The position numbers and the translations under genes were made by a program. From Mizuhopecten yessoensis (lineage: Eukaryota), in assembly GCF_002113885.1 (NCBI RefSeq), contig NW_018406690.1:456520-520519 (forward strand): 64,000 nucleotides of DNA. The letters run 5' to 3'. Shown here in pieces: positions 20,700 to 22,134 of this stretch. The notes beneath the pieces were generated by a model. It saw only the letters and a list, made by a program, of their open reading frames with translations, was not told the DNA's origin and searched no databases. Every line of letters begins with the position of its first letter. The first letter of the stretch is position 1.

Positions 20700-20800
20700 G
20701 CATTTACTATATAGTCATCTAAAAATATTTTTAATGAACTGGCTGTTCTGGCCTCGTCCAATCAGATCGCTCGCCTATATTTAGTCGGCTATATAAGCGG
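20700..20800 (-). promoter_or_regulatory. Distal KLF promoter: TATA-like element, CCAAT box, MEF2 box and CTTATATA element
   Basis: TATATAGT near 20712-20705, CCAAT at 20758-20762, MEF2 consensus CTA(W)4TAG at 20775-20784 and CTTATATA at 20797-20790, all 100-200 bp upstream of the distal ATG. Confidence 0.6.
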
Positions 20801-21232
20801 GCCGCGCTACAGTCAGTTCAGTAGTGCTTAGAGATGTCCTACAGTACACAACAAACAAATGTGAGAAAGGTCTAGAATGATTACCTTACACATAAACACC
20901 AGATGAGTTCATACCTCCTTAATCATATGAACCTGAATAATGAAATTAAACTTAAATGATCTGAATTGGGTAAATTGAGCATATAACGCAAGTTATAGGG
21001 AAAAAACAACATGGCATAGCTATGTTGAATACGTAGTAACATTGACCCAATTTTTAAAGCGGTCACGATCGACGGATCGGAAGAGAAACCGATAGCCTGG
21101 TGCACTACGTACTTTGCCGAAGTTAGATAAAATGTCTTCCGAGTAAAACCGAAACTTGCCGATGATGTCATATGATCACACGTTCATGCTTACCTGACTC
21201 CAGACATACAGTTTTTGTAAGCATCGTTTCGT

Positions 21233-21269
21233 CTAAATTTAGCTGGCTATTAATAGAGGCGTATATAAG
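21233..21269. promoter_or_regulatory. Upstream tandem MEF2 boxes plus TATATAAG
   Basis: CTAAATTTAG at 21233-21242, CTATTAATAG at 21247-21256 and TATATAAG at 21262-21269. Confidence 0.55.
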
Positions 21270-22134
21270 TGTTTTCGCTGTCGATACTGAACAGTTCGTT
21301 AGACGACGTGAGCAGAGGCAGAAGTCTGTCCCGTGCCGATACAACAATGTACATAGTGTATGGTATATCCTGATGTGCAGGATACATCAGGTGATAGAGG
21401 CATGATTTGTAACAAGTTGTAATATCATCTTCACCCTCCACACACTCCTTACCTAATCACAAACTAATACGTCAGAAGCGTATCTACGTGACCTCAATAT
21501 CTTAAAAGTTTAAATAGTTTATCTCATTAATTGTGACATACATCGATATAATAATATTCACTTCGACCTAATTACATATGTTTCATTTCGTAATTTTGGA
21601 GATGAAAAGAATCCGTATAGAAGGAAATGAATATATATTTTTATGTTAATTTGAATATTTTTTAATCATCTACCATATTAGATTTTGTGTAATGTATAAA
21701 TAATAATATAACATCCAACGATGGCACATATCAATATATCGATATGATAAACAATTTCGATGTCATTTCACCAATAAATTAGATTTCCTTTCTTCAGTAG
21801 TTACATACAATCTGATTACATACCACCCTCTGCTATTAGCAGGTGGTATGCACATGTCACTGTGGATTCAAAATATCATACATTTCTAAATAGATATGTT
21901 CTGTCGCTCAATCTGAATACATTTTACCATGGCATTTTACTTGAGAAACTTCTGTGTGTATCAAACTACAGTTGTCATTATGACTTGAATTTTAGATTCA
22001 AATGTTGACAGGAGTCTTGTTTACGGTGCCATAGACGCTTATTATCTACATACATGACGGGTGTCATGTGAATTGCATTTTATACTCTTGGTTTACGTTT
22101 GTTATTTTCTGTGTTTGTTGATATTCATGATGTC

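Follow-up and report, generated by a model that had tools for sequence, protein, structure and literature searches.

The KLF gene of the scallop Mizuhopecten yessoensis carries two composite elements upstream of its transcription start, each formed by a TATA-like box followed closely by a MEF2-type box, and, judged by their letters and arrangement, these are invertebrate members of a known vertebrate element, the "MEF2-TBP double motif" of the flow-induced KLF genes. The element is already known in vertebrates; what appears to be new is its bilaterian depth, as the element behind the blood-flow response of vertebrate KLF2 appears to be older than the divergence of the major bilaterian lineages. 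At the level of sequence, our species comparison shows a composite that holds its position, order, and orientation in the KLF2-type promoters of molluscs, a brachiopod, a hemichordate, and a mammal, and that is under strong purifying selection. Coordinates refer throughout to the window, the 64-kb stretch of scallop DNA that was analyzed.

An earlier, sequence-only reading of this DNA had named the gene downstream of the composites as KLF2/4, and it is indeed of the KLF1/2/4 type. With the exon-2 open reading frame (ORF; 19625-18408, minus strand) as the protein search query, without exon 1, the top matches were mollusc "Krueppel-like factor 2" proteins, including those of Ylistrum balloti (92% identity) and M. 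yessoensis itself (100% identity over the aligned half). The ORF ends with three C2H2 fingers. Since its N-terminal LLD(F/L)DFILSNT activation motif, TPPSSP...KRGRRSW linker, and fingers are common with shark KLF4 and echidna KLF2, the scallop gene is, on these protein features, the pro-orthologue of the vertebrate KLF1/2/4 group. The coding sequence contains a long polyglutamine tract of CAG/CAA codons (19043-19115), which was passed over as a repeat in read mapping and whose length varies between scallop proteins (models of 437, 405, and 372 a.a).

Two raw-read RNA runs (X21 and X24) define a single intron (joint 19651/20511, GT..AG on the minus strand) and cover the sequence from 20511 to at most 20693, with read ends accumulating at 20643 and 20652 and zero depth across 20694-21700. 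Because RNA coverage stops by 20693 and the start codon is at 20586, the transcription start lies within 20652-20693; it is bracketed rather than base-exact, and the offsets given here take it as ~20683. On this scale, the proximal pair lies ~90-115 bp upstream of the start (TATA-like box at -112 to -107, MEF2 box at -101 to -92) and the distal boxes lie at -550 to -584, while the reads themselves leave 81 bp or more between the proximal MEF2 box and the start downstream of it. Between the proximal pair and the start sit a CCAAT box and a separate core TATA, for which CTATATAG at 20714-20707 (about -30) is the probable candidate (Table 1). An inverted third copy of the composite lies over this core TATA at 20728-20707, reading ATATTTTTAG-atga-CTATATAG in gene orientation (the MEF2-like ATATTTTTAG at 20728-20719), and is seen in both scallops only.

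No transcription from the distal copy was detected in the raw RNA reads (zero depth in the two runs), and in these libraries neither composite serves as the -30 TATA of an expressed start. An upstream non-coding exon, hinted at by CAG|GTAAGC after the distal module, was ruled out, as neither RNA coverage nor a splice joint was found there. Two "RNA" Logan runs (X5 and X1) gave unspliced contigs of low depth over 20698-21568, a region of zero depth in the raw-read runs, and this cover of the promoter is probably DNA carry-over. These contigs differ from the window at 14 bases, none inside the composites, an observation that is not significant alone.

Table 1. Features of the KLF gene and its promoter in the scallop window.
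Feature	Position	Strand	Evidence or remark
Distal TATA-like (TBP-type) box ACTTATATA	21262..21270	-	TATATA core 21267-21262
Distal MEF2-type box 1 CTATTAATAG	21247..21256	-	5 nt past TATATA core; kept across phyla
Distal MEF2-type box 2 CTAAATTTAG	21233..21242	-	4 nt past box 1
Proximal TATA-like (TBP-type) box GCTTATATA	20790..20798	-	kept in 9/9 species compared
Proximal MEF2-type box CTAAATATAG	20775..20784	-	sequence, species comparison
CCAAT box, reverse (GATTGG), putative NF-Y site	20758..20763	-	~-80 to -75; ATTGG core begins 12 nt past proximal MEF2 box
Probable core-promoter TATA box CTATATAG	20707..20714	-	RNA coverage begins 14-55 bp downstream
Interval holding transcription start	20652..20693	-	raw RNA reads X21, X24
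Exon 1: 5' UTR, start codon 20586, splice donor just past 20511	20511..20693	-	RNA reads
Exon 2: remaining KLF coding sequence, polyQ tract, three C2H2 fingers	18408..19651	-	stop codon 18410-18408
Promoter block, ~830 bp	20587..21414	-	~88% identical to Ylistrum (L001 9190-10012), sharp edges

On the minus strand, the distal pair (21270-21233) reads ACTTATATA-CGCCT-CTATTAATAG-CCAG-CTAAATTTAG and the proximal pair (20798-20773) reads GCTTATATA-GCCGA-CTAAATATAG-GC, each a letter-for-letter match to the string given in the sequence-only reading. The 8-mer CTTATATA, which that reading had placed twice at 5 bp from a strict MEF2 box CTA(W)4TAG, is present at 20797-20790 and 21269-21262 and is best read as a TBP/TATA-type motif. 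The adjacent third box that it had described is CTAAATTTAG, which has the same letters as the mouse and echidna KLF2 MEF2 site. The three strict boxes of the composites, namely CTAAATATAG (20784-20775), CTATTAATAG (21256-21247), and CTAAATTTAG (21242-21233), fit the MEF2 consensus YTA(W)4TAR. The two scallop copies have the motifs alone in common, with differing spacers and flanks, and a repeat search found no extended direct or inverted repeat or transposon-like structure joining them, in keeping with the view that this is not a simple duplication.

The strict MEF2 box is enriched in the window, with nine copies seen vs 2.67 expected (none of 100 dinucleotide-preserving shuffles reached nine), and three of the nine fall inside one 500-bp stretch upstream of KLF. 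The shuffle expectation of ~0.02 strict boxes per 500 bp comes close to an earlier hand estimate of ~0.03. By itself, CTTATATA is unremarkable (10 seen vs 5.7 expected in the window). For the combination of both boxes, TATATA[C/G]-N2-5-CTA(W)4TAG, the strict form gave two copies in 64 kb vs 0.000 expected and the relaxed form three copies vs 0.035 expected (200 shuffles). With two strict copies in the window and no linking repeat, the pair is neither common there nor part of a transposon; the sequence-only reading had named a genome-wide abundance of the pair, or its membership in a transposon, as counting against it.

In vertebrates, the corresponding element has been dissected by experiment. 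The mouse Klf2 MEF2 site reads ctaAATTtag, and promoter activity is lost on its mutation (PMC4108324). A human -221 fragment holds one consensus MEF site that is needed for induction (PMC5532219), the human KLF2 region concerned extends from -221 to -114 (PMC5713352), and a shear-responsive KLF2 element was placed ~100 bp upstream of the start (10.1101/2022.09.29.510167). The element had been described before, as the KLF2 shear-stress response region (Huddleson 2004/2005) and as "A/T-rich motif A" together with the MEF2 site (Sohn 2005; Kumar 2005). A February 2026 preprint by Fleisinger et al. then defined the MEF2-TBP double motif, an element that is essential at flow-induced KLF genes and rare in the genome (10.64898/2026.02.04.703710), independently arriving at the two-part grammar that the sequence-only reading had given for vertebrate KLF2. 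According to that work (10.64898/2026.02.04.703710), the double motif is required for the shear-stress induction of KLF2, TBP binding to it rises under shear stress, and mutation of either half abolishes its activity; the TBP half is the "A/T-rich motif A" of Sohn 2005. The KLF2 copy lies 110-134 bp upstream of the start, besides a proper core TATA. Although extremely rare genome-wide, the motif is found again at the promoters of KLF6 and KLF7 and at an enhancer of KLF4. The conservation analysis extended from human to zebrafish, and the word "invertebrate" is absent from the text. Precise spacing within vertebrates is emphasized, with a spacer of 3 bp (2 bp in one zebrafish element) and a genome scan at 2-4 bp (10.64898/2026.02.04.703710).

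A literature text search did not find the human KLF2 flanking string, and the vertebrate context was therefore taken from the echidna genome. Vertebrate KLF2 proteins were reached with a 220-residue C-terminal shark KLF4 query, the length filter having left out full-length KLF4. Echidna KLF2 (L010) reads GTTTATATAC-TGCGG-CTAAATTTAG-GC, which is almost the human string given in the sequence-only reading, and this is the sole MEF2-type site in 13.6 kb. GATTGG comes 51 nt after it, and TATAAGG a further 22 nt on. Because the surrounding promoter is very GC-rich and the motif stands in it as an AT island, base composition is no explanation for the motif. Counted from TATATA to CTA, the spacer is 6 nt in the echidna, which is taken to equal the mammalian 3 bp; on that provisional scale, the 5 nt of both scallop copies would correspond to 2 bp and the 4-6 nt of the other invertebrates to 1-3 bp.

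The promoter comparison covered nine species: this scallop, Ylistrum, Pinctada, Mytilus, Mercenaria, Haliotis, Lingula, Saccoglossus, and the echidna. The sample thus holds one vertebrate genome (the echidna) and is without an ecdysozoan, cnidarian, annelid, echinoderm, or amphioxus; a Logan contig from a third pectinid (L002) comprises the intron and exon 2 only and made no promoter contribution. The sequence-only reading had proposed orthologous invertebrate promoters as a check, and in these the pair was found in five further mollusc genera as well as in Lingula and Saccoglossus: TATATA-N4-6-CTA(W)4TAG occurs in gene orientation and <700 bp from the start codon in Ylistrum, Pinctada, Mytilus, Mercenaria, Haliotis, Lingula, and Saccoglossus. 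Altogether, the composite is kept in nine species of four phyla, with flanks that are unalignable outside the scallops, and there are usually two copies per invertebrate KLF promoter. It is confined to the KLF promoter both in the scallop window and in each ~22-kb locus, where the only matches are the promoter copies, bar the inverted copy at the scallop core TATA.

The proximal copies read TATATA-ggtat-CTAAAAATAG in Pinctada, TATATA-ggtat-CTATAAATAC in Mytilus, TATATA-ctccg-CTATTAATAG in Mercenaria, TATATA-caagg-CTATTAATAG in Haliotis, TATATA-ccctt-CTAAAAATAG in the brachiopod Lingula, and TATATA-ggag-CTAAAAATAG in Saccoglossus, a hemichordate and thus a deuterostome. The distal copies read TATATA-ccga-CTATATTTAT-caat-CTATAATTAG in Pinctada, TATATA-ccagta-CTATTTATAG-atta-CTAATTATAA in Mytilus, TATATG-gtcat-CTATTAATAG in Haliotis, TATATA-cccgt-CCAAAAATAG in Lingula, and TATATA-cccatt-CTAAAATTAG in Saccoglossus; no distal copy was found in Mercenaria. 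The distal TATA-like box keeps its relative location in Ylistrum, Pinctada, Mytilus, Lingula, and Saccoglossus, with TATATG in its stead in Haliotis, and the second MEF2 box at 4-nt spacing is limited to the scallops, Pinctada, and Mytilus. Departures from the strict MEF2 consensus comprise the Mytilus proximal CTATAAATAC, the Pinctada distal CTATATTTAT, and the Lingula distal CCAAAAATAG, and the spacer between TATATA and CTA ranges over 4-6 nt across species. Measured from the ATG, the proximal copies of the invertebrates fall between -175 and -243 (-175 and -271 across all species compared) and the distal copies between -476 and -681. TATATAC is the sole 7-mer that all eight independent lineages have in common over the 750 bp preceding the ATG.

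The proximal composite is followed by CCAAT or ATTGG in 9/9 species (gap of 12-13 nt in 6/9), and neither follows the distal composite in any species compared. This suggests that NF-Y, binding at the adjoining CCAAT box, may be a conserved third partner, one undiscussed in the cited vertebrate work. A motif scan of the compared promoters found no ETS CGGAAR, CRE, E-box, or CACCC motif that was consistent across phyla.

These loci are ~65% AT and the motifs are short and AT-only, which raises the question of chance or convergence, with AT-rich promoters independently yielding TATA-like and MEF2-like strings. By shuffles, however, at most 0.06 composites are expected per locus, against 1-3 seen in each of the eight invertebrate loci at a constant orientation, order, and promoter interval; moreover, the motif is kept in the GC-rich echidna promoter, and the surrounding sequence diverges freely even between bivalve orders. 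We regard chance or convergence as effectively refuted and its probability as negligible.

Between this scallop and Ylistrum, the ~830-bp promoter block is conserved as a whole (Table 1), and both the sequence farther upstream and intron 1 are unalignable. Because such a block stands out at ~88% identity beside unalignable DNA, it must, on this pairwise comparison, hold many more constrained sites than the two composites. The Ylistrum pair is too close to resolve single motifs, and distant orthologous loci were used instead. The sequence GATGCT lies 8-10 nt past the second distal MEF2 box in the scallops (~21224-21219), Pinctada (L003 ~8803), and Mytilus (L004 ~9514) and is absent outside Pteriomorphia among the compared species. 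In addition, the deposited Pinctada imbricata gene model begins at 10001, and a conserved exon 1 (ATG, GTAAGT donor) lies at L003 9403-9478; the model probably misses the true first exon.

Two further features of the window were noted. A T/G-rich tandem array with a 40-bp period lies at 22135-22275, ~900 bp upstream of the distal module, and comprises three overlapping 61-nt copies (87-100% identical). A second promoter-like cluster lies at 6700-6800 (plus strand), ~11.6 kb past the KLF stop codon, with AACCAATGG, CTAATAATAG, a palindromic double CCAAT (AGCCAATTTGATTGGCT), and CTAAATTTAG within 90 bp. This cluster is without TATATA at double-motif spacing, no gene-like ORF of at least 90 a.a lies nearby, and the Ylistrum locus, over its available extent, has no strict boxes matching it.

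The checks proposed in the sequence-only reading that were run all came out in favor of its interpretation. In our assessment, the scallop composites are likely counterparts of the vertebrate KLF MEF2-TBP double motif and would act as a signal-responsive upstream promoter element, not as a core TATA. The shared layout comprises a TATA-like box, a MEF2 box, a CCAAT box, a core TATA, and a start ~100 bp downstream of the MEF2 box. By analogy with vertebrate experiments, a MEF2 dimer would occupy CTA(W)4TAG and TBP would bind the adjoining TATATA as a conventional activator. Signals directed to MEF2 (MEK5-ERK5 phosphorylation, class IIa HDAC release) would then turn the KLF gene on, while NF-Y at the CCAAT box may support basal activity. 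The distal copy, with two MEF2 boxes in pteriomorph bivalves, would add another input of this type, in the manner of a promoter-proximal enhancer. A mechanical, flow, or activity role in the scallop is speculative.

The composites could instead be the core TATA boxes of alternative starts ~30 bp downstream, with the MEF2-like boxes as incidental AT-rich sequence. Both TATATA and CTA(W)4TAG are acceptable TBP targets, and stage- or tissue-specific starts could escape a sample of two raw RNA runs. We nevertheless hold this to be very improbable: RNA depth is zero across 20694-21700 in both raw-read runs with exon 1 covered, the observed start has a TATA of its own at about -30, and CCAAT lies downstream of the composite in all species, whereas a core TATA would have it on the other side. 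For vertebrate KLF2, KLF6, and KLF7, alternative starts of this kind were likewise considered and rejected (10.64898/2026.02.04.703710).

It is also conceivable, if unlikely, that the element is functional and conserved with other binders in invertebrates, the MEF2-TBP mechanism being a vertebrate specialization. Candidate binders would be SRF or another MADS factor at the W-rich boxes, or a homeodomain or AT-hook factor at TTATATA. The Lingula distal CCAAAAATAG is a CArG/MEF2 hybrid and the Haliotis TTATATGG resembles half a CArG box, but 15 of the 17 boxes that flank a TATA-like motif fit YTA(W)4TAR and only one approaches CC(W)6GG. The DNA specificity of MEF2 is, moreover, conserved from flies to mammals, and cooperation between MEF2 and TBP is reported in Drosophila (Clark 2013, as cited in 10.64898/2026.02.04.703710). 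An SRF/CArG reading of the first scallop box was ruled out, with no CC(W)6GG at the modules. As the preprint describes that study, MEF2 and TBP cooperate in Drosophila at an AT-rich composite of immune genes under the control of MEF2 phosphorylation (Clark et al. 2013), and the protein partnership thus exists in a protostome; the site described there is a single shared motif, unlike the KLF composite in layout and with other target genes.

Set beside the element of vertebrate KLF2, the scallop composites agree with it in several respects. In each case, a consensus MEF2 box comes immediately after a TATA-type box, at a comparable position (~100 bp upstream of the start in the scallop versus 110-134 bp in vertebrate KLF2), and the gene concerned is of the KLF2 type and has its own core TATA at about -30. 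The echidna copy shares letters (TTATATAC...CTAAATTTAG) with the scallop boxes, including the common TATATA core, and its box order is that of the scallop proximal module, with the CCAAT box between the motif and the core TATA, although the scallop spacer is one nt shorter (5 vs 6 nt after TATATA). The copies are also deployed differently: the scallop has two within 600 bp of the start, the distal one with an extra MEF2 box, whereas vertebrate KLF2 has one promoter copy and enhancer copies at -41 and -66 kb. Binding, ERK5 dependence, and the shear response have been demonstrated for the vertebrate element, whereas the scallop element is known from sequence. The double motifs found in the KLF6 and KLF7 promoters and in an enhancer 148 kb upstream of KLF4 (-148 kb) follow the same grammar as the scallop at KLF-family genes, and the KLF6/KLF7 copies, 322-412 bp upstream of the start, are comparable to the scallop distal copy but belong to paralogous genes.

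Few enhancers are reported to be common to deuterostomes and protostomes. Like the deeply conserved bilaterian cis-regulatory elements, the KLF composite is non-coding sequence that is recognizable across the protostome-deuterostome split, but it spans ~21-25 bp and is held by motif grammar and position, in contrast to a long alignable block. The sequence-only reading had suggested that a MEF2-to-KLF module may date to the bilaterian ancestor, an age consistent with the composite standing on both sides of that split. Because two copies are present on both sides, the simplest reading of the comparison is that the duplicated module was already in the bilaterian ancestor. A fuller scenario, which we offer tentatively and stop short of favoring, is that the duplicated TBP-MEF2 motif and the CCAAT box formed the promoter grammar of a single KLF1/2/4-type gene in the protostome-deuterostome ancestor, kept for more than half a billion years. 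In this scenario, the driving of KLF by MEF2 (with TBP) would be an ancient circuit responding to stress, activity, or mechanical signals, which the endothelium of vertebrates recruited later to sense blood flow; the distal KLF2/KLF4 enhancer copies of vertebrates may also derive from the ancestral distal copy.

Conservation of promoter-element sequence from mollusc to mammal is very rare. Here, the experimentally dissected flow switch of vertebrate KLF2/KLF4, a proposed therapeutic target, has counterparts in animals without endothelium. The compared promoters supply natural variants for the study of MEF2-TBP grammar, including spacers of 4-6 nt, one or two MEF2 boxes, and CArG-like substitutions, and the role of the MEF2-TBP-KLF module before closed vasculature becomes a testable question.
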